The notes under the pieces are model-generated. The model searched no databases and had not been told where the DNA came from. It saw only the letters and a program-made list of their open reading frames with translations. Below, one piece after another: positions 3 to 37,553 of a stretch of DNA of 64,000 bases (positions are counted from its first letter, which is position 1; each line of letters starts with the position of its first letter). The stretch is from positions 62,001-126,000 of IMG/VR virus record IMGVR_UViG_3300046787_000200. One strand, given 5' to 3'. Position numbers and translations under genes: made by a program.

Positions 3-563
3 ACCAATTCAGTATTTGACTATTGGAAACACTTTAAAAGTGTACATGTACAAACAAGTATTGATGCTGAAGGTAAAAGAGCAGAATATTGGAGAGACGG
101 TACTGTTTGGGAAGACATACTTACTAATATAAAACTTATTAAAGAAAGCAAAGTTCAATGGTCTATACATAGTGTAATCTCTTGGGCTAATGTTTATAGC
201 TATGTAGAATTAGTTAAAACATTATTACAAGAAAAATTATCACTCGGGTATAATTTTACCATATGGTGCTTAGATGAAAGCCATGAATTTAACTTACAAG
301 AATTACCTGACTTTAAAAAACAAGAAATAGCAAGTATGCTAGATACATTTATTGTAGAGTTAGAAGATGGTAAATTTGGTAGATATTTAGGTGAACCTGT
401 AATAAAAACAAATATAGAAAATATTAAAATGTTTATGTTTGCTAAATCAATACCTATAAATAAAGAAAAATTTGAAAAACATTTCATACTAGATGGTATA
501 AGAAATAAGGATTTCTTTGAGTACTTCCCCGAACATGAAAACATGAGAGAATATATACAATGA
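3..563 (+). CDS. Radical SAM protein, C-terminal part (5' truncated by window edge)
   Basis: Frame open from base 3 (TNSVFDYWKHFKSVHVQTSIDAEGKRAEYWRDG...), with the SID-x-G-x-RAEYWR motif of the downstream paralogues; same frame as ORF 336..563. Confidence 0.85.
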   Translation, partial: TNSVFDYWKHFKSVHVQTSIDAEGKRAEYWRDGTVWEDILTNIKLIKESKVQWSIHSVISWANVYSYVELVKTLLQEKLSLGYNFTIWCLDESHEFNLQELPDFKKQEIASMLDTFIVELEDGKFGRYLGEPVIKTNIENIKMFMFAKSIPINKEKFEKHFILDGIRNKDFFEYFPEHENMREYIQ

Positions 564-4202: not shown

Positions 4203-4246
4203 ATGGTATACGGAACTAAATAAAAAGATCCCGTAATATTATCACA

Positions 4247-5536: not shown

Positions 5537-5548
5537 CGAGAGACATTA

Positions 5549-6730
5549 ATGGATTTAACACCTTACAAAAATTGCCTAGCATTAAAAAATAGTATTTTTA
5601 TTGCCAACGAAGAAAAGCCATATCGCCCATGTTGTTGGTTTAAAACATATATAGATGCAACAGATGTTGATGACTATAAAAAACAGTTAAGTGAATTAGA
5701 TTTGGAATACAACTGTGATTATTGTATTAAACAAGATCAAGGTGGGCAATATAGCTATAGACAAATGTTTGGTGATCCAAACGAGATGGTTATCACGGCT
5801 TCATTTGATAACATATGCAATTTAAAATGTGTCACTTGCACACCAAATAACAGTACACAAATCCTTGCAGAAAGATTTAAGTTTGATGAAAAAGTTGAAG
5901 CAGAATATGCTAGAAAGTATATCACTGAGGTAGTAGCTAAACAAGCACCTAAGAAAATCGACTTTATAAAAACAACACTAGCAAATGCTAGTTTTAACAG
6001 ATTGCGATTTGATATATTAGGTGGTGAACCATTGATTAACCCAGCCATCTTTGAATTTATGGATTGGTTATCAGATCAACCTTATGCACATAAAACAACA
6101 GTGGCGATTACTACTAATGGAACCACTTACACCGACAAGCTAATTAAGTACCTTAATAAGTTTCAACGTGTGGGAGTGCAAACTAGTATAGATGGTATAG
6201 AAGAAGAATTTGAATATTTACGTTATGGATCATCATTTGAAAATTTAGAACAAGTATGTAATAAATTCTATGCATTGAAAAAACAATATTCTAATTTTGG
6301 TATGGGAACTCATTACACATTATCATGGATGAATTGTTTAAACTTTGCAGAATATTTTAATTGGTCACAAACTAACTACCCTGATATTGAAATTTATGTA
6401 AGTAAGTTACAAAGTCCTGATCATTATTCTATTGAATTATTGTCATTAGAAATGCGAACGCAAATATATAATGAAACAATGAGAAAGATACACACTCCTG
6501 TAAATGCATATTATGAGAAAGCTTTGTTCTTATATAAAGAACATATGTTATCTACAGCGTATGATGAATATAACGAAAAATTATTACAGCACGGCATGTC
6601 TACACTAAACGTTATTGATTATAGACGTAATGCCGATCATAGAAAGATAATTAAAAACTTTGTTAACTTTTTGTCATTAAATAAGAAAAATCCATGGTTC
6701 AACTATGTCATGGATAAAAACCCTAAATAA
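5549..6730 (+). CDS. Radical SAM protein, paralogue of 3012..4202
   Basis: PYRPCCWF...CDYC; CNLKCVTC; GGEPLINP. Confidence 0.88.
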   Translation: MDLTPYKNCLALKNSIFIANEEKPYRPCCWFKTYIDATDVDDYKKQLSELDLEYNCDYCIKQDQGGQYSYRQMFGDPNEMVITASFDNICNLKCVTCTPNNSTQILAERFKFDEKVEAEYARKYITEVVAKQAPKKIDFIKTTLANASFNRLRFDILGGEPLINPAIFEFMDWLSDQPYAHKTTVAITTNGTTYTDKLIKYLNKFQRVGVQTSIDGIEEEFEYLRYGSSFENLEQVCNKFYALKKQYSNFGMGTHYTLSWMNCLNFAEYFNWSQTNYPDIEIYVSKLQSPDHYSIELLSLEMRTQIYNETMRKIHTPVNAYYEKALFLYKEHMLSTAYDEYNEKLLQHGMSTLNVIDYRRNADHRKIIKNFVNFLSLNKKNPWFNYVMDKNPK

Positions 6731-6739
6731 GAAACGAAT

Positions 6740-8056
6740 ATGATAGATAAAAAAATTGAAGATTTATCACCACATTTTTGCAGTGTGCCGTGGCTGCAAA
6801 TACACACTGAACCCAACGGGAAGGTATTTCCCTGTTGCTATTATAGCTTTGATGCAAAGCATGATTTGGGTAATTGGAATAAAGAAAAGCTATCTGACAT
6901 TTTCAATAGTACTAAATGGAATCAACTACGCAAAGATTTCTTAGATGGTAAGAAACCAGACCAATGCACACGTTGTTGGAAAGAAGAAGATTCAGGTTCA
7001 ACTAGTATGCGTCAACGTTTCAATGAAAGATATAGCGATTTCCCTGACTATACAAATCAGAATGGTTACAATAAACTAAAAGATATTATTACATATACCA
7101 ATGATGATGGGTCAGTCGGTGATATAAAATTGGCAACGATTGATTTAATCTTTAACAACTTGTGTAATCTCAAGTGCAGAACATGTGGTCCTGGATTAAG
7201 TACTGGTTGGATCCCTGACCAGATTAAACTAGGTAGATATCAGATTAACCCTACATCATTGATAACAAATGACGGTGTGTTGCATATGCAAGAGGATTTG
7301 GATTATCTGATTGATATGATAGATCCATACACAGAAATACATTTTAGTGGTGGTGAGCCGATGATGCAAGAGGAACACTATCTATTCTTAAAGTTATTAG
7401 TTGAGAAGGGTAAAACTAAAACTAAAATAAGATATAATACTAACCTTACAGTTTATACACTTAAAGACTATAACGCATTTGAAATGTTAAAGCACTTTGA
7501 TAATGTTTTCATTGTGGGTAGTATTGATGCAATGGGTAGTGAAGGTGAATATATACGTAAAGGATTTGATTGGGAGTTAGCTAAAAAGTGGATAGAGACT
7601 GCCAAAGAATATCTACCTAAAGCAGATTATGGAATCAGTGCTGTGTTCAGTTTATTGAACTGTTATGGATCCGTTGACCTACATAGATATATGTGTGAAA
7701 GTGACACGTTCAAAAGACCTGACGGTAGACAATTTGGATTCTATTTAAATACATTACATGCTCCATCACAGTTAAGAACTAAAATATTACCACCTAGCGT
7801 AAAATTAGAAGTAACAGAAAAGATTAATAAGCATTTAGAGTGGTTAGCAGAAACACAAGAACGTGATTTCAACTATGATGTAACAGTAGCACATTGGAAA
7901 GATGCAATTCAGTTTATGAATAGTGAAGATGAGAGTAAGCAATTACCAAGATTTTATGCGGAAACTGAATTGCTAGATGACATTAGAAAAGAAAAATTTA
8001 GTGATGTGTTCCCTTATTTAGATTCAAAAATTAAAGAGTTTTTAGCAAATGAATAA
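6740..8056 (+). CDS. N-terminal twitch-domain radical SAM protein
   Basis: CSVPW...FPCC...CTRC; CNLKCRTC; GGEP. Confidence 0.9.
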   Translation: MIDKKIEDLSPHFCSVPWLQIHTEPNGKVFPCCYYSFDAKHDLGNWNKEKLSDIFNSTKWNQLRKDFLDGKKPDQCTRCWKEEDSGSTSMRQRFNERYSDFPDYTNQNGYNKLKDIITYTNDDGSVGDIKLATIDLIFNNLCNLKCRTCGPGLSTGWIPDQIKLGRYQINPTSLITNDGVLHMQEDLDYLIDMIDPYTEIHFSGGEPMMQEEHYLFLKLLVEKGKTKTKIRYNTNLTVYTLKDYNAFEMLKHFDNVFIVGSIDAMGSEGEYIRKGFDWELAKKWIETAKEYLPKADYGISAVFSLLNCYGSVDLHRYMCESDTFKRPDGRQFGFYLNTLHAPSQLRTKILPPSVKLEVTEKINKHLEWLAETQERDFNYDVTVAHWKDAIQFMNSEDESKQLPRFYAETELLDDIRKEKFSDVFPYLDSKIKEFLANE

Positions 8057-9362
8057 TAATTTTAATCCAGTCGAACTAGCAAAGAACAGTAAAACATTTT
8101 GTATTTTTCCATGGATACAACAATATGTTGGTCCACCCGGTGATGTTAAACCATGCTGTGTATATGACAACAAAGATGAGATAGGTAACTTAAAAGAAAA
8201 CACATTAGCAGAAATTTGGAACAACGATAAGACTAAACAGATGCGTTTGAATTTTCTGAATGGAATAGAAGAACCGGGATGTAGTATTTGCAACAGACGA
8301 GCAGAACTGGGTCATGCACATAAGAATGAATATAATAGAATATTCTTTGATTCTGATGCAGAAATTCAGAAAATAGTAGCAAGTACAAATATAGATGGAT
8401 CACTCGATGAACATAAACTTTACTATATTGATGTACGTTATAATAACTTATGTAACTTAAGTTGCCGTAGTTGTGCTCCGCACTTTAGTACTAGCTGGGT
8501 ATTGGATCATAGAAAGTTGTACAATATACAACATAAAAGAGATAAAGATGATGGATTTCAATTTCCGGGCAAGACTGAAGAACAAGCATTAGAAGAAATA
8601 TTACCGCATTTGGCTACTGCAAAGATGATTTATTTTGCAGGTGGAGAACCATTAATGCAAAAAGAACATTATGAAGTTCTTAATAAGTTGATAGAGTTGG
8701 GTAATACTGATTTAGAAATACGTTATAATACAAACTTCAGCAATCTTAAATTGAAAAAATATGATAACGTAATTGAATATTGGAAGAAGTTTTCTAATGT
8801 GCATGTATATGCTAGTTTAGACGGTAGTCATGCGAAAGGTGAATATTGGCGTAATGGTATAAATTGGGACCAAGTAGTAGAAAACCGTAAACAAATGATG
8901 AAAGAATGTCCGCATGTTAATTTTATGATTTCATATACATTGAGTTGGCCTAATGCATTGAACTTAGTAGAGTTCCACAGAGAATGGGCTGATTTGGGCT
9001 ATTTGAAACCAGAACACATGTTAGTAAACCCATTAGATACACCATCATATTATTGTTTGAAGAATATTCCTGATTGGAAGAAACGTGAAATAGAAGAAGC
9101 GTTGCAGAAAAACATAGCATGGTTGAAATCTTTTGGACAACCTTTTGGAATCATAAGTATGTATGAAACTGCAATTAAGTTTATGTGGGATGATACCGGA
9201 AAATATAGTTATGGTGTTGATGAAAGCTTGAAAGAGTTTAACAAAATAACTACAAAGTTAGATGATATACGCAATCAAAATTTCTATACAGTATATCCAG
9301 AACACATAAACATTAAAAATTATTTGACACAAAACAATTTAAATGTTGAGTTTAATTATTAA
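8049..9362 (+). CDS. N-terminal twitch-domain radical SAM protein, paralogue of 4247..5536
   Basis: SKTFCIFPW...VKPCC...CSIC; CNLSCRSC; GGEP. Confidence 0.9.
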   Translation: MNNNFNPVELAKNSKTFCIFPWIQQYVGPPGDVKPCCVYDNKDEIGNLKENTLAEIWNNDKTKQMRLNFLNGIEEPGCSICNRRAELGHAHKNEYNRIFFDSDAEIQKIVASTNIDGSLDEHKLYYIDVRYNNLCNLSCRSCAPHFSTSWVLDHRKLYNIQHKRDKDDGFQFPGKTEEQALEEILPHLATAKMIYFAGGEPLMQKEHYEVLNKLIELGNTDLEIRYNTNFSNLKLKKYDNVIEYWKKFSNVHVYASLDGSHAKGEYWRNGINWDQVVENRKQMMKECPHVNFMISYTLSWPNALNLVEFHREWADLGYLKPEHMLVNPLDTPSYYCLKNIPDWKKREIEEALQKNIAWLKSFGQPFGIISMYETAIKFMWDDTGKYSYGVDESLKEFNKITTKLDDIRNQNFYTVYPEHINIKNYLTQNNLNVEFNY

Positions 9363-10615
9363 TGGATGAAAAGAAGCTATTTAAAATAAGAGATGAGACT
9401 AGTCCAACTATGTGTTTGGCTAAGTTCCATGAGGCTAGTATTTGGGTTTACTCAGGTAAGATAGCCAGCTGTCACTACACTCCGTTCATACAAGTAGGTA
9501 ATACAGTAGATACATTCTACAATCCTACTGAAAAACGTGAACAACAAAAACGTATGCTTGCAGGAGAACAACCACCTGCATGTGATAGTTGCTGGCGTTA
9601 TGAGAACTTAGGATTGCGTAGTGATAGAACACGTAAGAGCTTGAGCTTCAAGGATCACTTATCAGCAGAAGATTATAAGAATCCTAACTATGTATTCAAA
9701 CCAAAAGCATTAGAGTTAGCTTTTCAAAATACATGTAACTTAGCATGTAGCTACTGTAGTCCACAATTCAGTACAAGCTGGATGAATGATATCAGAGTAA
9801 ATGGTGTTTATCAACAAATCGTTACAGATGATCGTAGACATTATCAAAAAGATATCAATGAAATCAATGAGATGATTGACCCTCCTGACATGACATTGTT
9901 CTGGGAATGGTTTGAAACTGTTGCAACTAGTTTAGAATCTATCCGTGTTTCGGGCGGAGAGCCACTAATGCATGAAGAAGTTTTTCGTGTGTTTGAGATG
10001 ATGACAGAGATGAACCCTAACATTGAATGCGTGATACACAGCAACCTCTGTCAAAAGCCAGTAGTTATGGATAGATTCTTTGATAAGATTAGTGGCTTAA
10101 CTAACTTGCGTATGAACATTAGTAATGAATCTGCAGGTGAAACAGCAGAATTTATACGTGAGGGTATGGTATATACTGAATGGTTAGAAAATATTGAACG
10201 ATTGGCTAATAGTACAGTAAGAGAATTTAGTGTAAGCACAACAGTTAGTGCAATTGCATTACAATCATTAGATCAAATGTATTTGGATATTATTGCTATT
10301 CGTAATCGTAGTAAAGTAAAGCCATATATATCTATCAATATGGTTGATAAGCCAGACTTTCAGGGCTTTGCTTGTTTAACTAGAAGTGAACGTGATTTCT
10401 ATATTGATAAATATACCAAGTTCTATGAATCAATTAACCATGAATTGTTACCAGTTGAACATGAACACTGTGCTAGATTGTTAAAGTTCTTAGATGAAGG
10501 GTTTGTTAAAGAAACACAACCTCAATTGCGTAAAGACAGTGATATCTTTTTTGAACAATATACTAAACGTAGAAACAAGCCAGACAATTTGGCAAAATAT
10601 ATAGGATTAAAATAA
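9362..10615 (+). CDS. N-terminal twitch-domain radical SAM protein
   Basis: CLAKF...SCHYTP...CDSC; CNLACSYC; GGEP. Confidence 0.88.
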   Translation: MDEKKLFKIRDETSPTMCLAKFHEASIWVYSGKIASCHYTPFIQVGNTVDTFYNPTEKREQQKRMLAGEQPPACDSCWRYENLGLRSDRTRKSLSFKDHLSAEDYKNPNYVFKPKALELAFQNTCNLACSYCSPQFSTSWMNDIRVNGVYQQIVTDDRRHYQKDINEINEMIDPPDMTLFWEWFETVATSLESIRVSGGEPLMHEEVFRVFEMMTEMNPNIECVIHSNLCQKPVVMDRFFDKISGLTNLRMNISNESAGETAEFIREGMVYTEWLENIERLANSTVREFSVSTTVSAIALQSLDQMYLDIIAIRNRSKVKPYISINMVDKPDFQGFACLTRSERDFYIDKYTKFYESINHELLPVEHEHCARLLKFLDEGFVKETQPQLRKDSDIFFEQYTKRRNKPDNLAKYIGLK

Positions 10616-11787
10616 TGGAAGAACAGATGTATGATATAAATTGTGTGACGAGATTGCACATTGAGTTATCAAGTAGATGTAATGCTAGTTGCCCTGCATG
10701 TAGTAGAAATCATAGCGGTGGCCCTGTTGCAGAAGATTTAGAACTTACTGAGTTATCAATCGATGATATCAAACGTATGGTTCCAGTAGAGATTGCACGA
10801 AATATAAAAAGTATTAATTACTGTGGCAATGTTGGTGATCCAGGTATGGCACCTGATCTATTAGAAATCATACAATATTTTAGAGAACATTCACCTAAGG
10901 TCGTACAACAAATTAGAACAAACGGTGGAATGCGCAACCCTGAGTATTGGACTAAGTTGGGTAATTTCTTTGCAAGACAAGCAGATCCCAATAATAAGTT
11001 CTTATTTAACATGGCAGGGGTAGTGTTTAGTGTTGATGGATTAGAAGATACTAATCACATTTATCGCAGAGGTGTTAAATGGGAAAAGTTAATTGCTAAC
11101 ATGAGAGCATATAGTGCTACCGGTGCATATGCTATATGGGAGTGGTTGATATTTGAGCACAATCAACATCAAGTTGAAGAAGCAAGAGCATTAGCAAAAG
11201 AATTAAATTTTCAGTTTATTGTTAAGAATCCACTAGGATTCGGTGAATATGATGGTAAAGTTAAGGGCTTATCTGTGTATAACAAAGAAGGTGCGTATGA
11301 GTACTCTATTTGGCCTGCTAATCACAAAGGTCCCAAAGAAGGACCAAACTTTGGTGAGAAAGTAGATTTCACTAAAATGATTAAAACGATTCCTATCATA
11401 AATGAATTCAGTAAAGAATTAGAAAAAACTTCTACAATAAAATGTAAGTCAATTGAACGTAAAGAATCACAAGAAGTTTATATCTCTGCTACTGGATACA
11501 TGCTACCATGTTGTTTCTTGGGAGGTGTATTTGGACAATTTAATAGTTCTTATAGTAGATATCAATTTAATACAATGATTAATGATTATGGATTGGATGT
11601 GTTTAATTTAAACAAACGTTCAATGTTAGAGATAATTAAAGGTCCTGAATTTTCAAAATTCTTTTTAGATGGTTGGAAAGCAGATACGATTGAGAATGGT
11701 AAATTGTTATTTTGTTTAGAAACATGCGGAAATCAATCTGCTATGGATAAATTATATAGAACTAAGATGATAGAGGTATCAAAATGA
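10615..11787 (+). CDS. Radical SAM protein with C-terminal SPASM/twitch cysteines
   Basis: N-terminal CNASCPAC; CGNVGDP in place of GGEP; C-terminal IKC...LPCC...CLETC. Confidence 0.88.
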   Translation: MEEQMYDINCVTRLHIELSSRCNASCPACSRNHSGGPVAEDLELTELSIDDIKRMVPVEIARNIKSINYCGNVGDPGMAPDLLEIIQYFREHSPKVVQQIRTNGGMRNPEYWTKLGNFFARQADPNNKFLFNMAGVVFSVDGLEDTNHIYRRGVKWEKLIANMRAYSATGAYAIWEWLIFEHNQHQVEEARALAKELNFQFIVKNPLGFGEYDGKVKGLSVYNKEGAYEYSIWPANHKGPKEGPNFGEKVDFTKMIKTIPIINEFSKELEKTSTIKCKSIERKESQEVYISATGYMLPCCFLGGVFGQFNSSYSRYQFNTMINDYGLDVFNLNKRSMLEIIKGPEFSKFFLDGWKADTIENGKLLFCLETCGNQSAMDKLYRTKMIEVSK

Positions 11788-12533: not shown

Positions 12534-13263
12534 GATTATCACTTTGGGTGATAGTTTTACGTTTGGACATGGGTGTGCAGACCGTGAATATTACTATGAC
12601 CATGATACTAAAACATTCATAGGTGATCATAGACCTTTTAAAGAAAATATTCCTAGTCAATATTGTTGGCCTACTTTACTTCAGCAACATATGCATGAGG
12701 TTGAAGTTATTAATTTATCGCAACCGGCAAATTCCAATCAGGGACTATTCCGTAACTTATTAACCTATTGTGAAACCAACACAATTAATGAAGGTGATAT
12801 TATCATCTTTAACGGATCATTCCCGGGTAGGATAGACATTGCATCAGGTGCTCGTCCTGAAGTTACTGTTCCTTGGGTCATGGGTTGGGATCACCAATCA
12901 CAAATGGAAAATGAAATTGAATACAATGTTGCTAAAAAAATGTACATAACACATTTATTCAATGATTCAATAGGATATACACAATCATTGTCATCAGTAT
13001 TAGCAACACATGCATTTGCTACAATGTATAAAGCAAAGTATATTTGGTCATTGCCCAATCATGTTTATCCAAAAGAAGTTCTGGATAAACTAAAACCAAT
13101 TAATCATTTACGAATAACAGACTTATGTAAATATGATTTTTCTGGCACTAACACATATGATTTTAACAAAACTTGTTTTGCTCCCGATTATCACGTGAAT
13201 AATTTGGGACATTCTATATACTTGCAAAAACAAATAATCCCCGTCATACAATCCCTTCTATAA
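12517..13263 (+). CDS. SGNH/GDSL-like hydrolase
   Basis: GDSFTFG, NLS-x-P-x-x-SN, DYHVNNLGH. Confidence 0.75.
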   Translation: MSQLRKIITLGDSFTFGHGCADREYYYDHDTKTFIGDHRPFKENIPSQYCWPTLLQQHMHEVEVINLSQPANSNQGLFRNLLTYCETNTINEGDIIIFNGSFPGRIDIASGARPEVTVPWVMGWDHQSQMENEIEYNVAKKMYITHLFNDSIGYTQSLSSVLATHAFATMYKAKYIWSLPNHVYPKEVLDKLKPINHLRITDLCKYDFSGTNTYDFNKTCFAPDYHVNNLGHSIYLQKQIIPVIQSLL

Positions 13264-13271
13264 ATATCGTA

Positions 13272-14621
13272 ATGAATAATAATGAACAAATAGACAATCC
13301 AGACTCTGAATTCGTTGAAAAGAAAGTATTTCCCATACAAAACGAAGCCGCATGCTTGTACAAATGGGCATGGAGTACTATTTTCTTAAGCAGAGGTACA
13401 ACATCAAGTTGCCATAGAGGTCGTCATTGGAGATTGACTGAGGATAACTTCATGGATTTTCATAACCATCACGGTAAATTAGCCGACAGAGAAAAAATGT
13501 CGAGTGGGGAATGGCCTGGTAATGGTTGTGAGTACTGTAGAGATATAGAAAAAGCAGGTGGAACTAGTGATAGATCAGGATTTGTAAATGAATCAATAGA
13601 ACTATTACCACCTGAGTTTGAAGGATATGTACAGCGTATATATGAATATGATACTATCCCGTTAAAAGTAAGTCCTACACTATTAGAAGTTTATTTTAAC
13701 AATGTATGTAATCAATCATGTGTCTATTGCACTCCTGGATTTAGTAGTCAGATTGAACAAGAGGTTCGCAAATACGGGCCTAGCAAGTATAATGAAGATT
13801 ACAGCACATGGCGTCCTGATTCAAAATACGAATTGTATAAAGAAAAGTTTTGGGAATGGATGGCAAAGAATAGTGAGCATGTACAGATATTACAAGTATT
13901 AGGCGGTGAGCCACTATATCAAAAAGAGTTTGAACAATGTTTAGATTTCTTTGACAAGAACCCTAGACCTAATTTAGTATACCGTTCATTTAGTAATCTA
14001 AAACACGATCCTGAAAAGTTTAAAGCAAAGATACAGCGAGTACAAAACTTGATTGATCAAGGTAAATTAAAACGTATGGAAGTTGTATGTAGCATTGATT
14101 GCTGGGGTCCGGAAATTGAATATGTACGTGATGGCTTGATACTAGCCGAATGGGAAGAAAACATGAACACATTGTTAACGACTCCTGGTATGGGAGTATT
14201 AGTTCATGCTACACTTACTGCATTAACGTTGCCTACATTGAATCAATTGATAGAGAAAACAAATGAATGGCGTAAGATAAAAGATACAGTAGGTATCAAT
14301 TGGAATACAGTTGTTAGACCATCAACATTCAATCCATATAATTTTGGTAAATATTTGGCACCGTTTATTGATAGATCGATTGATGCATTAAATTACTATA
14401 GTAACCATGTAGAGAAAGAAAAGTTACAGACACACTTACGTGGTATACAACAACAGTTATTAACTACACCCGCAAATAAAAAAGAAGTTAATGACTTTGC
14501 TAACTTCTTAGATGATATAGACAAACGTAGAAATAGAGATTGGCGAACATTATTTCCGCAAATTGTAGATATTGTAAATATTATAAACAAAGAGGAACCA
14601 GACTATGTTCAAGTGGATTAA
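13272..14621 (+). CDS. N-terminal twitch-domain radical SAM protein
   Basis: CLYKW...SCHRG...CEYC; CNQSCVYC; GGEP; TATAAATA 5 nt upstream. Confidence 0.88.
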   Translation: MNNNEQIDNPDSEFVEKKVFPIQNEAACLYKWAWSTIFLSRGTTSSCHRGRHWRLTEDNFMDFHNHHGKLADREKMSSGEWPGNGCEYCRDIEKAGGTSDRSGFVNESIELLPPEFEGYVQRIYEYDTIPLKVSPTLLEVYFNNVCNQSCVYCTPGFSSQIEQEVRKYGPSKYNEDYSTWRPDSKYELYKEKFWEWMAKNSEHVQILQVLGGEPLYQKEFEQCLDFFDKNPRPNLVYRSFSNLKHDPEKFKAKIQRVQNLIDQGKLKRMEVVCSIDCWGPEIEYVRDGLILAEWEENMNTLLTTPGMGVLVHATLTALTLPTLNQLIEKTNEWRKIKDTVGINWNTVVRPSTFNPYNFGKYLAPFIDRSIDALNYYSNHVEKEKLQTHLRGIQQQLLTTPANKKEVNDFANFLDDIDKRRNRDWRTLFPQIVDIVNIINKEEPDYVQVD

Positions 14622-17028: not shown

Positions 17029-20000
17029 ATGTTAAGAGATGTATTTTATTTCGGAGATAAACCCAACGTTCACCCAAGAGAAAAGTTTGCAGTAGATTTA
17101 GCTGATGCTAAACGACAGTCAACCACTGAGCACTTTTGGATAATTAACGAACATTGTAATTATAAAGATTTTGATTGGGACTGGGACTTTGATTTCCTAC
17201 CCGATGAAGATGTGTGGGCAGAAGAACACAACAATGTTTGGCCTAGCCCCTATCAGAAAGATAGTGGCACTTGGTTATGCAATGCAGACAATGATGAACC
17301 ACTAACAATCTATCGTGCAGACGTAGATCCTATTCCATTAAAAGATGAAGTAACAAGTAACTGGAAGATCATTGAATATATTGAAAAAGATAAATTTGAT
17401 TTTAAATGGCATCCAGACCCAACTGACCCTCCCTACATATATGTATTTGGTAATGAATGGTATCCCGGGACTATTATGCCCACAGTTGAATATCATGTTG
17501 AAGGTGCAACAGAACGTAAATATGTAACTGATCAAATAGCTCAACTATTACCAATGCCAATGTTGTTCAATATCATATATGAACCGGCGGAGTTTGATTA
17601 TAGTTGGAGACCAGACCCTACAGCACCACCTTATATCTATGTATTTGGTAACAATCAATATCCTGCAAGTGTGATGCCAACGGTTGAGTTTCATGTTGAA
17701 GGTGCAACAGAACGTAAGTTTATTGAAAATATTGTTCCTAAGTTGGCAGCAAGACCTGCAGAATTTGATGTATTAGAAGATATAGATCAGTCATCATTTG
17801 ATTTTAGTTGGGTCCCTGATCCTACTGCGCCTCCTTATATATATGCTTGGGGTAATCAATGGAACAAGCCAGAAGATAAAATTAGTGTTCAGTATGTAGC
17901 AGAAGGTGCGACAGAATACAAATACATGGATGCACGTACTAAACGTAAGGAGTCAATGAATAATTGGAACATACCACCTAATATGTTTCAAAATAAGTTT
18001 GATTTTAGTTGGGAACCTAGTCCGGCTGATCTACCGTTCATATATCAATTTGGTACTCAATGGCAAAAAACACATGGTCCTCAATATATTGTAGAAGGCG
18101 CTACCGAGATAAAATATGTTGACGTATTAAAAGCAGAAGTTGTATGTACTGAGTTTGAAAATTGGCAAGTACCTAGAAACATTGACCAATCTAAGTTTGA
18201 TTTTAGTTGGCATCCCGATAGCACAGAAGAACCATACATCTATCAATTTCCTGATCAGTGGACCAGAACCGGTGGACCTAGATATGTCGTACCCGGCGCA
18301 ACTGAAATCAAGTACATAGATGTGCAGACAGCAACAGCTAAACATGACAAGACACACTGGGTTATACCTGATGATATTGATGTTAGTGAGTTTGATTTTA
18401 GTTGGCACCCCGACATAGATCACGCACCATTGATATATCAATTTGGAACTCAGTGGCAACGAACTAGTGGACCTAAGTTTTATGCAGTCGGTTGCACAGA
18501 AGATAGTGATATACAATATGTTGACATTATCAAAGCTAAAGCTTTGCCTAATAAAGAATTATGGCAAACATTAATCTCAGTAGATAATTTTGATTATAGC
18601 TGGCATCCAGATGAAACTGAAGAACCCTACATATATGTTTTTGGCAATCAATGGAATCGTGCTGAAGTAGAACCTACATTAATATATGAGATGCCTGGAG
18701 CAACACATAAAAAGTATATTAATGACATTGGTATTAAAGCATCTGCATATGCTGAAGGTTGGGAAACAATTGAAGATATTGAATCATTTGATTACAGTTG
18801 GAGACCTGATCCAGGGGATCCCGCATACATATATGTATTTGGTAATAAGCAATATGATGGCACAATTATGCCCACAGTTAAATTACATATCAAAGACGCT
18901 ACACAAGAAAAGTTTGTTGATGATATTGTTGCAACATTGGCACAACGTCCCGATCTATTTAAAAACACAGAACTAATCAAAGACTTTGACTATTCATGGA
19001 GACCAAACCCTAAAGACCCACCGTATGTATATCAGTTCGGGACACAATGGGCTAAAACACATGGACCTCAGTTTATTATACCTGAAGCTATTGAGACAAA
19101 ATTTATTAACTATCCAGTTGCAACAATATTGCCTGATATGACACACTGGGAAATACCAGAGAATGTTGATGTTACTAAGTTTGATTTTAGCTGGCACCCA
19201 GATGGTACTGCACCCGCATACATCTATCAATTTGGCACACTGCTTGATGATAAAGATGGTCCTAGATATATTACACCTGATAATGATGGTATAGTTGTTA
19301 ATTTAGAGCGTAAAGAAATCATATTAGAAGAATTGATATTCCCTAAGTACAATATAAAGACCACACTAGAAGATTTAATAAACGAACATGAAGGTGAAAT
19401 CTTTTGGGCTATCAACCCTGAACTTGACTACTCAAACTTTGATTTCAAGTGGGTACCTGATAAACAAAATGTCTATCACATTAATGCATTCGGTAGTAAA
19501 GATAATATCAACACACAGACTTATTTTGTCAATGGTAAAATGTGGCAGAAAGGCTACCGTGATATTAATTACGTTGAAGATAAAGTAATTGATGTTAGAA
19601 CTAAAATTGATATGTTCTTTGTTGACAGAGGTAATAGTCAATCACAAGAACGATTCAATAAGCTAAAGGCAAAGTTTGATAACATCACTAAAACACGATA
19701 CTTGAACAGTTGGGTTGATACAATTAATCGGTGTATTACTAAGTCAAGTACAAACTTGTGCTGGATATTGAACAGTGAGCTTGACTATGATGATTTTGAG
19801 TTTGATTACTATCCTAGTCCATGGCAAATGCGCATGGTTCATGTGTTCGGTACTCAGTGGAGTCATTGGGGCACAACGTTTATGGTTAACAAACATAGCT
19901 TCAGTGAAGATACAAAATATGTTAAAGTTATTGAACATTTAAGTAATCTTAACTTTGTCAAACGTAAGACTGCTAAAGCAACTAATTGTTTGTATGACAT

Positions 20001-21312
20001 ATATTTGATAGACCATGGAAATGAGTTACCAAAAGACATTAAAGGACATAATTATACTACGGTCAAATATGAACGTAGTTACTTAAACACATTTAAGAAT
20101 TTAGTAAAGACTTTACCGGACAAGAAAGAACATTATATTTGGATATGCAGTAGCGTATGTGATTATGAAAACTTTGATTTTGGTTATATTTGTGATCCAT
20201 ATGCCAAAGATCAATTACATGTATTCCCAAGCGACAAACAAAAGTTTGGAGATACTTTCCTAATTGATGTAAATAAGTTACGCACATTAATTGATGATAT
20301 GATTATGTTGGAAGATTATGAGAAGGTCAACTATAATCAACATCAAAGGGCGAAACGTTTACCTGCCCCTATTATTATTACGAAAGAAGATACACATGTT
20401 AACGATATTCATACTGACTTTGATTGGCCTTACGCTACGTTTGTCACGGAAGACAATAAAGAAATACAAGTAACAGATGTAGAACCAATGAGTTTATGGA
20501 CACCTGATAGTAAAAATATTATTATTACTAGTACCGGTGCAACACGAATCATTGTACCTAAAGAAGCAAAAGATTATGTAGAGAATGAGTTGTATGATTA
20601 TCCATACATCAGCCGTAGTAAATCTCTAGTTAAATCTCAGCCACTGGATATAGTCTTCCTAAGCAACGGTGAAACTGGTGCTGACGAGAACTACGAACAT
20701 TTACTGAAAGTGACTACGGGATTAAAGAATAGAGTTGTGCGTGTAGATGGCGTTAATGGTCGTGTACAAGCCTATCATGCGGCAGCAGAAGCAAGTAACA
20801 CGCCATGGATGTTCACCGTGTTTGCTAAGTTACGTGTTGATGATAAATTTGATTGGTCATGGCAACCTGATAGACTACAAGTACCCAAGCATTATATCTT
20901 TAATGCAACAAACCCTGTCAATGGATTAGAGTATGGTCACCAAGCTATGATTGCTTATAACAAGAAGATTACATTAGCTAATACTGGTAGAGGGCTTGAC
21001 TTCACATTAGATGACGAACATGAAGTTGTTGAAATGAATAGCGGTATAGCTATGTACAATACAGATGCCTGGAGTACATGGCGTACTGCATTTAGAGAAG
21101 CACTAAAACTAAGAGCCGATACTAGCCAAGCAAGTAAAGATAGATTAGATGCATGGTTAAATAAAGGCGAAGGGAACTTTGCCCAATATAGTTGTGAAGG
21201 TGCGCAACATGCTATAGAATACTATGAATCAGTTAATGGTGATTTAGATAAATTACGTCTAAGTTATGATTGGCCTTGGTTGAAAGAGTATTTTAATAAT
21301 AAATACAATTGA
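17029..21312 (+). CDS. 1427-aa protein with internal tandem repeats and C-terminal glycosyltransferase(GT-A)-like domains
   Basis: About 10 FD(F/Y)SWxPDx4PYIYxFG repeats; C-terminal DIVFLSNGE...RVDGVNG...YHAAA...WRTAFRE. Confidence 0.75.
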   Translation: MLRDVFYFGDKPNVHPREKFAVDLADAKRQSTTEHFWIINEHCNYKDFDWDWDFDFLPDEDVWAEEHNNVWPSPYQKDSGTWLCNADNDEPLTIYRADVDPIPLKDEVTSNWKIIEYIEKDKFDFKWHPDPTDPPYIYVFGNEWYPGTIMPTVEYHVEGATERKYVTDQIAQLLPMPMLFNIIYEPAEFDYSWRPDPTAPPYIYVFGNNQYPASVMPTVEFHVEGATERKFIENIVPKLAARPAEFDVLEDIDQSSFDFSWVPDPTAPPYIYAWGNQWNKPEDKISVQYVAEGATEYKYMDARTKRKESMNNWNIPPNMFQNKFDFSWEPSPADLPFIYQFGTQWQKTHGPQYIVEGATEIKYVDVLKAEVVCTEFENWQVPRNIDQSKFDFSWHPDSTEEPYIYQFPDQWTRTGGPRYVVPGATEIKYIDVQTATAKHDKTHWVIPDDIDVSEFDFSWHPDIDHAPLIYQFGTQWQRTSGPKFYAVGCTEDSDIQYVDIIKAKALPNKELWQTLISVDNFDYSWHPDETEEPYIYVFGNQWNRAEVEPTLIYEMPGATHKKYINDIGIKASAYAEGWETIEDIESFDYSWRPDPGDPAYIYVFGNKQYDGTIMPTVKLHIKDATQEKFVDDIVATLAQRPDLFKNTELIKDFDYSWRPNPKDPPYVYQFGTQWAKTHGPQFIIPEAIETKFINYPVATILPDMTHWEIPENVDVTKFDFSWHPDGTAPAYIYQFGTLLDDKDGPRYITPDNDGIVVNLERKEIILEELIFPKYNIKTTLEDLINEHEGEIFWAINPELDYSNFDFKWVPDKQNVYHINAFGSKDNINTQTYFVNGKMWQKGYRDINYVEDKVIDVRTKIDMFFVDRGNSQSQERFNKLKAKFDNITKTRYLNSWVDTINRCITKSSTNLCWILNSELDYDDFEFDYYPSPWQMRMVHVFGTQWSHWGTTFMVNKHSFSEDTKYVKVIEHLSNLNFVKRKTAKATNCLYDIYLIDHGNELPKDIKGHNYTTVKYERSYLNTFKNLVKTLPDKKEHYIWICSSVCDYENFDFGYICDPYAKDQLHVFPSDKQKFGDTFLIDVNKLRTLIDDMIMLEDYEKVNYNQHQRAKRLPAPIIITKEDTHVNDIHTDFDWPYATFVTEDNKEIQVTDVEPMSLWTPDSKNIIITSTGATRIIVPKEAKDYVENELYDYPYISRSKSLVKSQPLDIVFLSNGETGADENYEHLLKVTTGLKNRVVRVDGVNGRVQAYHAAAEASNTPWMFTVFAKLRVDDKFDWSWQPDRLQVPKHYIFNATNPVNGLEYGHQAMIAYNKKITLANTGRGLDFTLDDEHEVVEMNSGIAMYNTDAWSTWRTAFREALKLRADTSQASKDRLDAWLNKGEGNFAQYSCEGAQHAIEYYESVNGDLDKLRLSYDWPWLKEYFNNKYN
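17395..19290 (+). repeat. Ten diverged ~60-70 aa protein repeats
   Basis: Recurrent FD(F/Y)SW(H/R)PD, P(Y/F)IY(V/Q)FG, GATE-x-K(Y/F); recurrent ttgattttagttgg at DNA level. Confidence 0.9.
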
Positions 21313-21648
21313 AGTTATTGCTGTATGAAGCAAAGAGAAAAGTGTCTTGGACGGGGGTGCGAATCCCCCCAGGTCCACCATAAAACACATTAAGCCTGGG
21401 TTGCCGGGTCAGTAGACATGCAGGGTTACCTTGCGTCACTTCTGAAAAATAGTGTGTTTTATGATGGGCCTGACCTAGATTCGACAGGGCAACAAGTAAA
21501 TTAGTGGACAGCTCGGCAACGCAGAAGCCGTCAGGGTTGGGGGTTCCCGACTATAGAAGCACAAAAGTAAACGCAAACGACTCACAGTTCGCATTAGCAG
21601 CCTAAACGCCGCTTAGGGTAAGACATACCTCGTAACAGAAAATCAGAT
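21311..21648 (+). ncRNA. ssrA: Circularly permuted (two-piece) tmRNA; tag peptide ANDSQFALAA
   Basis: Acceptor piece first (T-arm GGGGG-TGCGAAT-CCCCC, CAGGTCC-ACCA ending 21380), intervening segment 21381-21465, then 5' end GGGCCTG at 21466 (G3.U70 Ala identity), GATTCGAC, tag frame 21573-21605; outer ends approximate. Confidence 0.92.
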
Positions 21649-21649
21649 G

Positions 21650-21674
21650 GGGCACTTAGGTGCCCTTTTCTTTT
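21650..21674 (+). terminator. Intrinsic terminator after tmRNA
   Basis: GGGCAC-TTAG-GTGCCC followed by TTTTCTTTT. Confidence 0.85.
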
Positions 21675-21701
21675 GCTATCATACAAGTTGTGATATATAA
21701 T
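21673..21701 (+). promoter_or_regulatory. Sigma70-type promoter of the tRNA
   Basis: TTGCTA-17 nt-TATAAT ending 10 nt before the tRNA. Confidence 0.7.
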
Positions 21702-21711
21702 AGATACAAAT

Positions 21712-21786
21712 GCGATTGATACTCGGTGGACGAGAAGGAGCCTCTAAAACTCTGATTTGCGGGTTCGATTCCCGTCAATCGCACCA
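21712..21786 (+). tRNA. Amber suppressor tRNA (anticodon CTA at 21744-21746)
   Basis: Acceptor GCGATTG/CAATCGC + ACCA; D-stem CTCG/CGAG; anticodon arm GGAGC-CTCTAAA-ACTCT (one C.A mismatch); T-arm GCGGG-TTCGATT-CCCGT. Confidence 0.88.
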
Positions 21787-21919
21787 GAGCAGAGGTTTAT
21801 CTATTGAAACCAGTATGAGTCGCTAAGGTAGTATACTAACCCTTAGGGCAAGCAACAGTATTAAATATACAGTAGATGACGGCCGAGAATAGAACGGCAA
21901 CTTTTTAAAGGAAAATAAA

Positions 21920-22492
21920 ATGGCATAGATTGAATATGGTTGTAAAGATGTAGTCTTTCACTTTAACAAAAAACATTTAGAAGACGAGACCGTACCAATG
22001 TGGGTCTTAAAAACACATGGTGAAACTTTTTACGTGAATCATGTTCATTGTAAAATGCCTTGGGATACAAAAGAAACTCCGGACAATACGCACACTAAAG
22101 GCTCTATCAAAATCAAGGAATGTCTCCTTACGATTGACGATGAGAATAATGCGACAATAGATAAACTGTCTGTATACGATAAGATTCGATTACGCAATCA
22201 ACGATTGGGTATCACACGAATTATGTTCAAGCCTGGCAGTCAAATGCATAGAGCATTACAGAACAAAGAGTTTAAGCACAGTTCTTTCAAAGTTATTGCA
22301 GGTGCATGTACAACTACATTCTTTGTTTGTGATATGCTAGTAAAATCTGAGGTTACATTTGCTTCATTGAAGTATGATGACTTTAGAATTTTATCACCCA
22401 ATGAAGGATATTATAAAGAATATGATAGTGTAAAAGATGGAAGGATTCAAGCAAATTATAGTGATCCGGACACCCCATATGAGTATTCTTAA
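21920..22492 (+). CDS. Hypothetical protein (190 codons) with in-frame TAG at codon 3; ORF track starts it at internal ATG 21998
   Basis: AAGGA SD then ATG GCA TAG ATT GAA TAT..., in frame with 21998 (78 nt, no other stop); ATG 21998 lacks a comparable SD. Confidence 0.7.
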
Positions 22493-24248: not shown

Positions 24249-25133
24249 ATGAAGAAAATCGCAATAGCGACATTATTAGTTGCATCAACAATGGTAGCAA
24301 CTGCACAAGTTAGATTAACAGGTAAAGTTAGCGAGTTCGTTGACAATACTAAAACAGGTGCAGTAAGCAAGACCAGTCTAGTAGCAGATCCAACAAGTAA
24401 CATTACCTTCTCAGCAACTGAAAAGATTATTGGTACTTTGACAGCTAATGTAGTACTAGATACAAGTTTAGCGGCTAATGATCCTATCGGTGGTGCTGAT
24501 ACTAAATTGGGCAATCGTCAATCTACAATTGGCTTGTCTAGTAAAGTTGGTAGCATTGACCTAGGTCGTAATCTACACAGTCATTTCTTAGCAATTACTA
24601 ACAATGATGCATTCGGCACATTGTATGGTTCTATTGCAGGTGATGTACATAATGTGCGTGGTGTTCGTGTCAGTAATGGTACGTTCCTTGCATTGAAGCC
24701 TATTATGGGCGTAACTGCAACTTATGACCGCACACACAATGGTGTAGGAACTGAAGCATCTAGTTACAGCGCAAGCGCATCAATGTTTGGTGTTAATGCA
24801 ACTGTTGCACAATTCACACAAGGTATTGAGAAAAGTACAGTGATTGGTGCAAGTGCAAAACTAGGTACTGCTAAAGTATTTTACACACATAGTGATGACA
24901 AAGGTGTAGTAGCAAGCACAGGTGATCTAGTCGGTGTAAGTCAACAATTTGGTGCAGTAACGGCAAAAGCAAGTTATGGTAAAACCAATACTGATGTTAA
25001 GGCTTACGCATTAGGTGCTGATTATAATTTGAGCAAGCGTACTATTGTTGGAGCAACATATCGTAATGTTGACGCAGTAGGTACAGCAAGTGATATTAAA
25101 CAAGTTGGAGTTGGTGTAACACACCGCTTCTAA
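24249..25133 (+). CDS. Gram-negative porin (betaproteobacterial type)
   Basis: Signal peptide; NRQSTIGL, IDLGR, ADYNLSKRT, C-terminal VGVTHRF. Confidence 0.88.
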   Translation: MKKIAIATLLVASTMVATAQVRLTGKVSEFVDNTKTGAVSKTSLVADPTSNITFSATEKIIGTLTANVVLDTSLAANDPIGGADTKLGNRQSTIGLSSKVGSIDLGRNLHSHFLAITNNDAFGTLYGSIAGDVHNVRGVRVSNGTFLALKPIMGVTATYDRTHNGVGTEASSYSASASMFGVNATVAQFTQGIEKSTVIGASAKLGTAKVFYTHSDDKGVVASTGDLVGVSQQFGAVTAKASYGKTNTDVKAYALGADYNLSKRTIVGATYRNVDAVGTASDIKQVGVGVTHRF

Positions 25134-35315: not shown

Positions 35316-35499
35316 TCAAGTTTATAGGAAAGTAATAAAATTGCCCTGGAATAAATGGTTTGCGTGGTATCCAGTAAGAGTTCATGGAAAATATACATGG
35401 CTTAAAATTGTGTACCGTCGTAGTCTACTTACATATGTTGATATGGATGATTGGTCACGATATGAGTATGGCACAATATTTGATATAATTAAAGAATGA
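35272..35499 (+). CDS. Hypothetical protein (start uncertain)
   Basis: WNKWFAWYPV...WLK; ATGA overlap with next gene. Confidence 0.6.
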   Translation: MTGSAIQHTGRTNYNQVYRKVIKLPWNKWFAWYPVRVHGKYTWLKIVYRRSLLTYVDMDDWSRYEYGTIFDIIKE

Positions 35500-36560
35500 A
35501 CATTCCACACTTTGGATTAGCAAGACAATATAAGAACATTGGTGAAGAGTTGCTTGATGCAAGTCACCGTGCGCTCAAAGACGGGCAATTGGTAGGTGGG
35601 CATTACACTCGTTCTTTTGAAGAATGGCTAAAGTTTAGAACCACAACAAAGTATGCAGTAACAGTTCATAGTGGTACGCAAGCATTAGAGATTATTGCAC
35701 GATATAAAAAGATTAAGCATAGTCAAACAATGGAAGGTAATCCTAAAGCTAGACTTCCTAATCTTACATACCCTGCGACACTTAACGCATTCTTAACTGC
35801 GGGTTGGGATGTTGAGTTAGGGGATACTGACAAGAATGGTATATTACCTCATCACAACAGAGTCGGGGGCATATATGATTGTGTTGTAGGATTTGCAGGA
35901 TTAAGACCATGGCCTAATACTAACTATTATGACAGTCACGGTGTAATTGTTGACGGTGCACAACATTGGTTAGTGTCTGGCGGCATGGTTGGTAGTGGTA
36001 TGGCAATCAGTTTTGACCCCACAAAGAACTTACCAAGCTCAGGCAACGGTGGTGCTATTGTAACAAATGATCACCACTTGTATATGTTTGCATCTTCATA
36101 TAGAGATAACAACAAGCCATCATTTTATGATGTAGGAACTAATAGTAAAATGAGTGAACAAGATTGTGCTCAAATATTAGTTAGAACAAAGTATCTGGAA
36201 GAATGGCAAAAGCGTAGAAGTGAGATAGCAAAGTATTGGTGTGACGCATTTAGAGACCTGCCATTGACTTGTCTATCTGACACAAAAGACCCACACGCAC
36301 ATCAAAAGTTTGTGATGTATTTACCTGATCGTAATAGCTTACACACGCATTTACTAACTGATGGAATCGATAGTAAGATTCATTATGAATATGTGTTAGG
36401 TGATTTGCCAACCGCACAAGATAGAAACATTAGTAGACCTGATTTGTTAAGTACTAGCGTAATGTTGTCTAGAGGCGCACTAAGTCTCCCCATGTACCCA
36501 GAATTAACCGATATTGAAGTTCAATATATTGCTGATAAGGTTGTAGGGTTTTATAAATAG
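35496..36560 (+). CDS. DegT/DnrJ/EryC1/StrS PLP-dependent sugar aminotransferase
   Basis: SGTQAL, VDGAQ, SFDPTKNL, GNGGAIVTND, LSLPMYP; TAG stop. Confidence 0.92.
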   Translation: MNIPHFGLARQYKNIGEELLDASHRALKDGQLVGGHYTRSFEEWLKFRTTTKYAVTVHSGTQALEIIARYKKIKHSQTMEGNPKARLPNLTYPATLNAFLTAGWDVELGDTDKNGILPHHNRVGGIYDCVVGFAGLRPWPNTNYYDSHGVIVDGAQHWLVSGGMVGSGMAISFDPTKNLPSSGNGGAIVTNDHHLYMFASSYRDNNKPSFYDVGTNSKMSEQDCAQILVRTKYLEEWQKRRSEIAKYWCDAFRDLPLTCLSDTKDPHAHQKFVMYLPDRNSLHTHLLTDGIDSKIHYEYVLGDLPTAQDRNISRPDLLSTSVMLSRGALSLPMYPELTDIEVQYIADKVVGFYK

Positions 36561-36563
36561 TTG

Positions 36564-37553
36564 ATGAAGATATTTCCAATTAAAGTAGAAAAAGCCGTAC
36601 CGACAGATCAAAAGTTTATAGAGTGGAAAATACATAATGTATGTAACCATGATTGTAGTTTTTGCGGTGCAAGACACAAAGATGGTAGCCAGCGCTGGTT
36701 CAGTTTAGAAAAGTATAAAGAATATACCGATAAATTAGTTGAAGCTTGCGGTGATAGTCCTTTCTGGATACAAATCACCGGAGGCGAACCCACATTGTTC
36801 CCTGACTTATTGCCATTACTTGCATATATGAAATCAAAAGGTGCAATGGTAAGTCTAATATCAAATGGATCACGTACTATACGTTGGTGGAAAGAATTAC
36901 AAGAAGCACATATAATTGATTACTTGTTTATAACATACCATAGTGAACAGACTGATAATTATACACATATTAGTGAAATATTAAATTTATTCCATAATGA
37001 ACCAATTGAAGTTGTTTGTTTAGTTACACATTCTATTAATAGTTTAGACAAAGCGTTTGAAGCTAGGGATTATTTAATGAATAACACCGGAGCTATAGTT
37101 ACTCTTAAATCAATGGTTTTTGGTGACTTTGACATTTATGAATTATATAGCAAAGAACAAATAACTAAACTAAAGCAAAACAATTGGGTATATGGTAATT
37201 TGAGAAATACAAAAAAACTATCCACATTGCCTATCAAATATAAAATAAATCACGCACTTAAAGTAACCTACAATAAAGATAACTTGTCACTAACAGTTGA
37301 TCCTCAATTGTTGATGAAGAAAAAACAAAATAAGTTTTTAGGTTGGGAATGTGCTATTGGCAATCATAACATGCGTATAGACCATGATGTAATATATCGA
37401 GGTGTATGCGAAGTTGGTGGACAGAAAAATTTGAATGATCCTAGTATTCAATTTGCAGATGATTATATAACCTGTACTAGCACTCAATGTTTTTGTGGTA
37501 CTGATATGATTGCACCTAAAATATTACCTGAGAATTTATACCCAAATGATTAA
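36564..37553 (+). CDS. Radical SAM protein with C-terminal Cys cluster
   Basis: CNHDCSFC, GGEPT, ISNGSR, C-terminal CAIG...C...CFC. Confidence 0.88.
   Translation: MKIFPIKVEKAVPTDQKFIEWKIHNVCNHDCSFCGARHKDGSQRWFSLEKYKEYTDKLVEACGDSPFWIQITGGEPTLFPDLLPLLAYMKSKGAMVSLISNGSRTIRWWKELQEAHIIDYLFITYHSEQTDNYTHISEILNLFHNEPIEVVCLVTHSINSLDKAFEARDYLMNNTGAIVTLKSMVFGDFDIYELYSKEQITKLKQNNWVYGNLRNTKKLSTLPIKYKINHALKVTYNKDNLSLTVDPQLLMKKKQNKFLGWECAIGNHNMRIDHDVIYRGVCEVGGQKNLNDPSIQFADDYITCTSTQCFCGTDMIAPKILPENLYPND

Follow-up and report, generated by a model that had tools for sequence, protein, structure and literature searches.

A suppressor tRNA and a start-proximal stop codon as a candidate natural translational gate in a T4-like jumbo phage

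This study concerns a short phage locus in which a gene for a suppressor tRNA is followed by a gene whose third codon is a stop codon. The DNA analysed (the window) comprises 64,000 nucleotides, positions 62,001 to 126,000 of the IMG/VR virus record IMGVR_UViG_3300046787_000200. It is a stretch of a T4-like jumbo phage and encodes a T4-type large terminase, gp32, a RecA/UvsX-like protein, gp9/10 and thymidylate synthase. All features of the locus lie on the plus strand. ARAGORN identified a suppressor tRNA with the anticodon CTA (CUA in the RNA) at 21712-21786, and Rfam scored it as a tRNA with 35.7 bits against a gathering threshold of 29. Directly 5' of it lies a two-piece (permuted) transfer-messenger RNA (tmRNA) with the tag peptide ANDSQFALAA (21279-21696, ARAGORN), which was matched in Rfam by beta_tmRNA (106 bits) and tmRNA_permuted (113 bits). 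A consensus scan placed a terminator-like hairpin followed by a T-run at 21649-21666, closing the tmRNA unit, and a promoter-like site (TTGCTA-17 nt-TATAAT, 10/12 matches, a pattern match only) at 21673-21701, 10 nt 5' of the tRNA. The latter site is a candidate promoter of a unit formed by the tRNA and the gene behind it. The same scan detected no terminator-like site in the 133-nt spacer between the two (21787-21919), and in the window they are presumably co-transcribed.

The gene downstream of the spacer opens with the Shine-Dalgarno (SD) sequence AAGGA (21909-21913), followed by a two-codon leader, ATG GCA (Met-Ala; ATG 21920-21922, GCA 21923-21925), and by an in-frame TAG with A as the +4 base (21926-21928), which is referred to here as the gate. 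Behind the gate, 187 codons remain open (21929-22489; 190 codons counted from the ATG, final stop excluded) before a TAA stop at 22490-22492. The original prediction had placed ATG GCA TAG 133 nt past the CTA tRNA, in frame for 190 codons, and had likened its SD context to those of the genes at 22611 and 24249; the coordinates agree, and the context, ttaaaggaaaataaaATG, matches those of the two other genes. The first in-frame ATG, GTG or TTG past the TAG is the ATG of the sequence MWVLK at 21998, 23 codons downstream, and inspection of the sequence in front of this ATG revealed no SD. Folding of the gate and spacer gave no significant read-through-stimulating RNA structure (fold z-score 0.22).

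A homologue search using the post-stop piece only (21929-22489) as the query returned 928 database relatives, the majority of which span the full length. The 80 best viral-contig relatives (63-100% identity) made up a first locus set, 75 more came from a second locus scan that started from the short form of a cultured phage, and removal of identical DNA left 109 unique loci. All 80 of the best relatives display the same arrangement: an SD, an ATG, a variable stretch of 1-9 codons and the TAG, behind which comes the conserved sequence I-E-Y/F-A-C-K-D-V-V-FHFNK, from which we name the protein family. In 97 of the 109 unique loci the TAG gate is on the FHFNK gene itself, and in the other 12 it is on an upstream PTH2 gene. 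Within these 97 loci the leader is 1-9 codons long and variable in sequence (2 codons in 62 loci), an SD-like site stands 5' of the leader ATG in 95, and the +4 base after the gate is A in 90 and G in 7. The post-gate codon is ATT in 70 loci, ATC in 10, ACT in 4, GTT in 4, AAA in 3, AAC in 2, GTA in 2, ATA in 1 and GTC in 1, and thus always begins with a purine; a purine at +4 has been reported to favour amber suppression in E. coli.

Conservation of the protein extends up to the gate. In a 49-sequence alignment that includes distant members from cultured phages, residues F10, H11, F12, N13, K14, H16, L17, P23, M24 and W25 are invariant, and 8 of these 10 are encoded upstream of the first ATG at 21998. 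The motif FHFNKxHL, invariant even in distant relatives, is preceded by no start codon past the gate in the window. When 80 unique sequences were placed in register, the nine codons after the TAG retained their amino acids while synonymous codons varied (TAT/TAC 43:14, GCT/GCA/GCG 37:22:5, AAA/AAG 35:33, GAT/GAC 42:22). The invariant residues and the synonymous variation indicate strong purifying selection on the protein. Since amino acids are kept while codons vary, the stretch after the TAG is translated, which rules out the MWVLK methionine as the start of the protein. The suggestion in the original prediction that the 23 codons between TAG and MWVLK are protein-like is therefore well founded, and homologues conserve this N-terminal extension and do not begin at the MWVLK methionine. 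A short leader placed upstream of an independently initiated main open reading frame (ORF) was considered and rejected on the lack of an ATG, GTG or TTG in the 23 codons after the TAG, the lack of an SD at 21998 and the position of the invariant residues upstream of it.

The identity of the gate codon was examined across the whole viral collection through the conserved 23-mer that follows it. Among 66 exact matches, TAG precedes 64 and CAG, AAG or GAG precedes none; of the remaining two, one is an unrelated chance match and one has TAG one codon further upstream. No sense codon was found at the gate among the relatives examined. Database proteins beginning MAQIEY... appear to carry glutamine at this position, and the contig encoding one of them (P0002) reads ATG GCA TAG ATT; the Q arises because gene calling used a table in which TAG encodes Gln (code 15), and is therefore no evidence for CAG. 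Database calls of 180 residues that start at an internal GTG also have the upstream TAG. The public protein collections (P0001-P0120) consequently hold the family in two wrong forms, either with Gln at the gate (code-15 calls on short contigs) or truncated at an internal GTG or ATG.

The suppressor tRNA accompanies the gate. Of the 80 loci of the first set, 69 contain a tRNA(CUA), as do 71 of the 97 unique gated loci; in the latter it invariably shares the strand of the gated gene and lies upstream at a median distance of 649 nt. Only 17-37 nt separate the 3' end of the tRNA from the leader ATG in 14 of 68 related loci, a spacer that fits an SD and not a promoter, which implies that tRNA and gated mRNA form one transcript in those 14 loci. 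The tRNA(CUA) family comprises about 50 (49-50) distinct sequences with compensatory changes in 11 of 16 stem pairs, and G1-C72, C2-G71, G3-C70, A73, CCA and the anticodon loop CUCUAAA are fixed family-wide; the window tRNA is a class I tRNA with encoded CCA and the same loop. The compensatory changes and fixed elements suggest that these are functional tRNAs, and identity elements probably reside in the acceptor stem. ARAGORN attaches the label 'Pyl' to the CUA anticodon. The sequence resembles an ordinary class I tRNA with G1-C72 and A73, and no Pyl genes were found among 45 window ORFs scanned with Pfam. Bacterial initiator tRNAs are marked by a 1-72 mismatch and by an anticodon stem whose base consists of three G-C pairs in a row. 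An initiator tRNA that uses UAG as a start was rejected, since all members pair G1 with C72 and their anticodon stems vary and are not rich in G-C; in the related loci, moreover, the position of the SD follows the leader ATG and not the TAG.

The original prediction had also described the locus as a translation-control island on account of the tmRNA. This stood in part only: 39 of 80 related loci have a tmRNA no more than 10 kb from the gated gene, and a PTH2 gene is gated or adjacent in other lineages. The tmRNA tags of related phages differ strongly in length, from 10 to about 30 residues. A blastn comparison of the region with cultured phages returned only a short match, in the tmRNA acceptor piece.

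A second gated gene encodes a PTH2 peptidyl-tRNA hydrolase. In a subgroup of at least 11 loci, tRNA(CUA) is followed after 20-190 nt by ATG, 1-2 codons and TAG at the head of a PTH2 gene (Pfam PF01981, E-value 2e-9), the end of which is overlapped by an ungated short FHFNK gene. All 12 unique loci with an ungated FHFNK gene have the gate on the upstream PTH2. Sinorhizobium phage Phosso and three metagenomic relatives carry a TAG-gated PTH2 two genes upstream of an FHFNK-domain gene; in GenBank the Phosso PTH2 (PV764938; L087 2887-3378) starts at an internal ATG, past conserved PTH2 residues, and Pfam coverage then begins at model position 13. The orthologous PTH2 of Agrobacterium phage Atu_ph07 (MF403008; L085 2935-3381), also annotated from an internal ATG past conserved PTH2 residues, is gated by TGA (ATG ATT GGC GAA CAC TTT TGA ATT...) and has no in-frame start for 32 codons past this gate. 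The Atu_ph07 paper and its supplement describe a single suppressor tRNA, with the anticodon UCA, whose targets were not identified (PMC6102473). We located this opal suppressor, tRNA(UCA), in the phage record (L173 35714-35788), more than 200 kb from the TGA-gated PTH2. Its acceptor stem reads GGGAGTG... as against GCG... in the CUA family, so that the UCA and CUA suppressors are probably not simple anticodon variants of one another.

Taken across these loci, the gate codon (UAG or UGA) appears to covary with the anticodon (CUA or UCA): the gate stop is never TAA, and TGA occurs only in Atu_ph07. The association of TAG with a CUA tRNA that the original prediction had put forward is borne out, with TAG universal at the gate, tRNA(CUA) co-occurring on the same strand and TGA appearing in the phage that has UCA only. 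Rhizobium phage RHph_I1_18, a 171-kb cultured phage (MN988519), contains an unannotated short form of the gated gene, MSEFM-TAG-NESCREVIFHFNK... (L086 3974-4219), which the GenBank annotation missed; its tRNA(CUA) begins 245 nt past the gate TAG, just beyond the end of the 76-codon ORF. The PTH2 genes of the jumbo phages Xoo-sp13, RsoM2USA and RAS14, used as controls, have ordinary ATG starts, which rules out gating as a general trait of phage PTH2 genes. Two loci have unusual arrangements. Locus L134 (5565-6250) has two successive gates, one on PTH2 and one on the FHFNK gene, and in locus L124 (5349-6600) a PTH2-like gene is gated, the FHFNK gene has an ATG exactly at the gate position and no tRNA(CUA) lies within 6 kb. 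No PTH2 was found in the window.

These observations are most readily accounted for by a natural translational AND gate in which decoding of a start-proximal stop depends on tRNA(CUA), a reading to which we assign a probability of roughly 0.8. A phage promoter would drive the tRNA(CUA) and, on the same transcript, the gated mRNA. A ribosome would start at the strong SD-ATG, add Ala and meet UAG at codon 3, where, if the tRNA were lacking, release factor 1 (RF1) would release a dipeptide. Nothing useful would then follow from the UAG, because neither a start codon nor an SD is present in the 23 codons behind it, where invariant residues of the protein are encoded. With mature, charged tRNA(CUA), an amino acid would be inserted at UAG, giving the full-length protein of 189 residues, so that the output of gated protein would track suppressor activity; where tRNA and mRNA share a transcript, the arrangement would constitute a feed-forward loop. 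As the stop lies at codon 2-10, the off-state would be cheap, with a tiny peptide released and no truncated protein made. In other lineages the FHFNK protein would partner PTH2, whose gene then comes first in the operon and bears the gate. The dependence of the full-length protein on the neighbouring tRNA, as originally predicted, is thereby supported by the comparative evidence.

The alternative that survives best, at a small probability, is that TAG is a sense codon in many genes of this phage in the style of code 15, the gated gene being one of many. Suppressor tRNAs do mark TAG-recoded phages (10.1101/2021.08.26.457843), gene callers picked code 15 for short contigs with the FHFNK gene, and only 64 kb of the 352-kb genome are in view. 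Against this, the window contains 78 dense standard-code ORFs, 42 of which end in TAA, 33 in TGA and 3 in TAG (at 32995, 36560 and 61168), and position 21926 is the sole plus-strand TAG in the window with a long start-less ORF behind it. Of the traits of code-15 phages the window has the cognate suppressor tRNA; it does not have fragmented calls or low coding density, and TAG has not been lost as a terminator. In the related loci, gated ORFs likewise occur in the FHFNK and PTH2 families only: a search downstream of the tRNAs and through all fetched loci yielded no further family above the level seen for TAA and TGA. The window therefore appears to use an otherwise standard code with no global TAG recoding.

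A slightly lower probability attaches to reinitiation, in which a Met-Ala mini-ORF terminates at UAG and translation restarts at the adjacent ATT with no suppressor involved, the nearness of the tRNA being incidental. AUU is known as a rare start codon, 80 of the 97 loci have ATT or ATC directly behind the TAG, and the leader resembles a classical regulatory upstream ORF. Reinitiation would nevertheless leave the tight same-strand linkage of tRNA(CUA) unexplained, as well as the exclusive use of TAG as the stop, with TGA confined to the phage whose suppressor has the anticodon UCA, and in 16 loci the post-gate codon is ACT, AAA, AAC, GTT, GTA or GTC, none of which can start translation. Just as improbable is a minigene of the lambda bar type, where SD-ATG-NNN-TAG would release a dipeptidyl-tRNA and thereby sequester a host tRNA or titrate peptidyl-tRNA hydrolase, with the downstream protein a secondary product of read-through. 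The bar minigenes of lambda are 2-codon ORFs, and AAGGA with ATG GCA TAG fits an SD with a 2-3-codon ORF, as does the prevalence of the 2-codon leader (62/97); several lineages, moreover, have a peptidyl-tRNA hydrolase as the cargo or next to it. Leaders can reach 9 codons, however, and a minigene explains neither the exclusive use of the suppressor-cognate codon nor the strict in-frame run into a strongly conserved protein that has no start of its own. The probability of a nonsense mutation, pseudogene or assembly error at 21926 is negligible: a single C-to-T change would turn CAG into TAG and database proteins do show Q, but that Q is TAG in the DNA, and the TAG is kept in every relative (45% to 100% identity) of a protein under purifying selection, which excludes sequencing error and a pseudogene.

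Several points weigh against tRNA(CUA)-dependent gating. Read-through itself is deduced from comparative sequence. No tRNA(CUA) was seen in the DNA of 26 of the 97 gated loci, whose flanks are short; for 6 of the 11 tRNA-less loci of the first set, less than 220 nt of upstream DNA is available. The suppressor of Atu_ph07 lies so far from its gate that distance is no disproof of a link, yet the 26 loci still lend the reading no support. The covariation of TGA with UCA is known from one phage lineage only, and a comparison with 227 other phage tRNAs by overall similarity gave tRNA(CUA) no clear nearest isotype. The suppressor would also read through the three genuine TAG stops of the window. Furthermore, 58 of the 97 loci have an in-frame GTG or TTG within 9 codons past the gate, usually a GTG that encodes a conserved Val 7-9 codons downstream, which could start a slightly shorter protein; the window itself has no such codon. 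Finally, neither a fold nor a family could be recognised for the gated protein, which leaves the purpose of the gate to conjecture.

Searches of Pfam, PHROGs, NCBIfam, PADLOC and a PDB sequence profile gave no match to the gated protein. An AlphaFold model with a mean predicted local distance difference test score of 86 predicts two domains, an N-terminal one of about 80 residues that is all-beta and a C-terminal one of the alpha/beta type. The former corresponds to residues 1-80 after the gate (21929-22168, delimited from the alignment, codon table and model) and contains the motifs FHFNKxHL, PMW and TKGS; the latter, together with the TAA, occupies 22172-22492. Foldseek found nothing significant for the model in the PDB (best E-value 0.09) and matched only uncharacterised phage proteins in BFVD. 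The possibility that the C-terminal domain is a diverged PTH2 was rejected, as hhalign against the PTH2 profile gave a probability of 0.9%. In many phages, including RHph_I1_18, the N-terminal domain (about 80 aa) stands alone. A search for bacterial homologues found only 6 matches among 185,579 species genomes, all on contigs of metagenome-assembled genomes; 3 of the 6 have a tRNA(CUA), two of these also a tmRNA, and the four contigs examined, with a gate or with tRNA(CUA)/tmRNA, look like phage DNA. The family thus appears to be essentially confined to phages. The companions of the FHFNK gene are the suppressor tRNA, PTH2, tmRNA and tRNA arrays, as well as RnlA and phosphatases in Atu_ph07 and Phosso, and their constancy suggests a role of the FHFNK protein in translation quality control.

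With respect to purpose, the gate may couple the supply of ribosome rescue and peptidyl-tRNA recycling to the stop read-through that the suppressor causes, or may delay both until the tRNA is mature, as in a feed-forward loop; we regard this as a speculative proposal with odds well short of even. Suppressor-driven UAG read-through would generate stalled complexes and peptidyl-tRNA, and the gate would scale the cargo to that load. Such dosage coupling is the most economical, if speculative, idea on purpose, the alternatives being that the gate serves as a delay timer or that the leader acts like a minigene. The original prediction had put forward, as possible purposes, the timing of expression, a sensing of RF1 or tRNA status, or a way to keep a toxic product off.

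The remainder of the window contains additional unusual genes. Nine consecutive paralogous genes of about 400-440 aa occupy 539-11787, and of four that were scanned all have a Radical_SAM domain and three also SPASM. Further radical SAM genes lie at 13203-14621, 36561-37553 and 37510-38514, an array unusually large for a phage. In the 35496-37553 region, a DegT-family aminotransferase gene ends in TAG (36558-36560) with T as the +4 base and is directly followed, in the same frame, by a radical SAM gene; suppressor read-through would fuse both proteins, although the arrangement may be a coincidence. A 1427-aa ORF (17029-21312) consists of about 13 repeats with the motif F-D-[FY]-S-W-x-P-D ... 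P-Y-I-Y-x-F-G-x-x-W, has no match in Pfam or PHROGs, and overlaps the start of the tmRNA call by about 30 nt at its end. At 24249-25133 lies a gene for a Gram-negative porin (Porin_4, E-value 1e-22, weakly PorB-like); the porin and the beta-type two-piece tmRNA hint at a betaproteobacterial host.

Reading of TAG or TGA as sense by phage suppressor tRNAs is known from recoded phages, where it is proposed to regulate late or lytic genes (10.1101/2021.08.26.457843; PMC9523058). The present loci share with them a phage suppressor tRNA that would decode in-frame stops in a standard-code host, and a dependence that is proposed to be regulatory. They differ in that recoded phages carry such stops in dozens of genes, among them structural and lysis genes, whereas here a single gene or operon with translation-rescue-related cargo is affected, the stop lies 1-9 codons past the start, the tRNA gene is a neighbour that often shares the transcript, and TAG still serves as a terminator elsewhere in the window. 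The phages XacN1 (PMC5852040), Atu_ph07 (PMC6102473) and Summit (PMC9022506) also combine CUA or UCA suppressor tRNAs with otherwise standard coding, and Atu_ph07 is itself a carrier of the module. In these reports the targets of the suppressors were not identified, having been sought at gene ends, or stop codons were only counted; here, in contrast, the target is at the gene start and hence outside the reach of searches for read-through at gene ends. No FHFNK homologue was found in XacN1 by tblastn. A review of jumbo-phage genomics mentions PTH2 and not suppressors, and a full-text search of the literature found no description of a start-proximal suppressor gate.

The design has a counterpart in synthetic biology: Anderson, Voigt and Arkin in 2007 reportedly built an AND gate from the supD tRNA and an amber-bearing T7 RNA polymerase gene. 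In both cases output would need an mRNA together with a suppressor tRNA that reads early in-frame ambers; the synthetic inputs are under separate promoters, whereas the phage module is one unit and would operate as a feed-forward circuit and not as a two-input one. Programmed read-through, as in Qbeta A1 and retroviral gag-pol, likewise decodes an in-frame stop as sense at a controlled frequency. It relies on host near-cognate tRNAs and yields functional products in short and extended form, while in the phage loci translation up to the stop gives a peptide of 1-9 residues, and the gene of a dedicated cognate suppressor accompanies the gate. Lambda bar minigenes and leader peptides have in common with the gate an SD, a very short upstream ORF and a possible link to peptidyl-tRNA hydrolase; in the gated loci, by contrast, the main ORF lacks a separate initiation site and continues the frame of the leader, and the stop follows the anticodon of the suppressor. 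What appears to be new is the combination of a dedicated suppressor with a single start-proximal gate on a specific operon, in very different standard-code phages.

Beyond the window, it is probable, though less firmly so than gating in the window itself, that a suppressor tRNA and, on the same transcript, a stop-gated operon with PTH2 and/or the FHFNK gene form a portable module that occurs across very different phages, matches its stop codon to the anticodon and sets translation-rescue capacity, and that these genes are the first natural targets of orphan suppressors. The carriers would include T4-like and jumbo phages of Alphaproteobacteria and probably Betaproteobacteria, as well as A-rich, SD-poor lineages. 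The analysis defines a large, strongly conserved phage-only protein family with a clear genomic association, and exposes systematic annotation errors, the gene being missing or truncated in GenBank records of cultured phages and truncated or given a spurious Gln in protein databases. As the module is carried by the cultured phages RHph_I1_18, Phosso and Atu_ph07, it is directly testable. The gate would provide a partial answer to the open question of what suppressor tRNAs target in standard-code phages, and would represent a natural case of single-operon stop suppression used as a switch, with the same logic as a synthetic-biology design. The nature of the gated cargo further hints at a link between suppression and ribosome rescue (PTH2, tmRNA).

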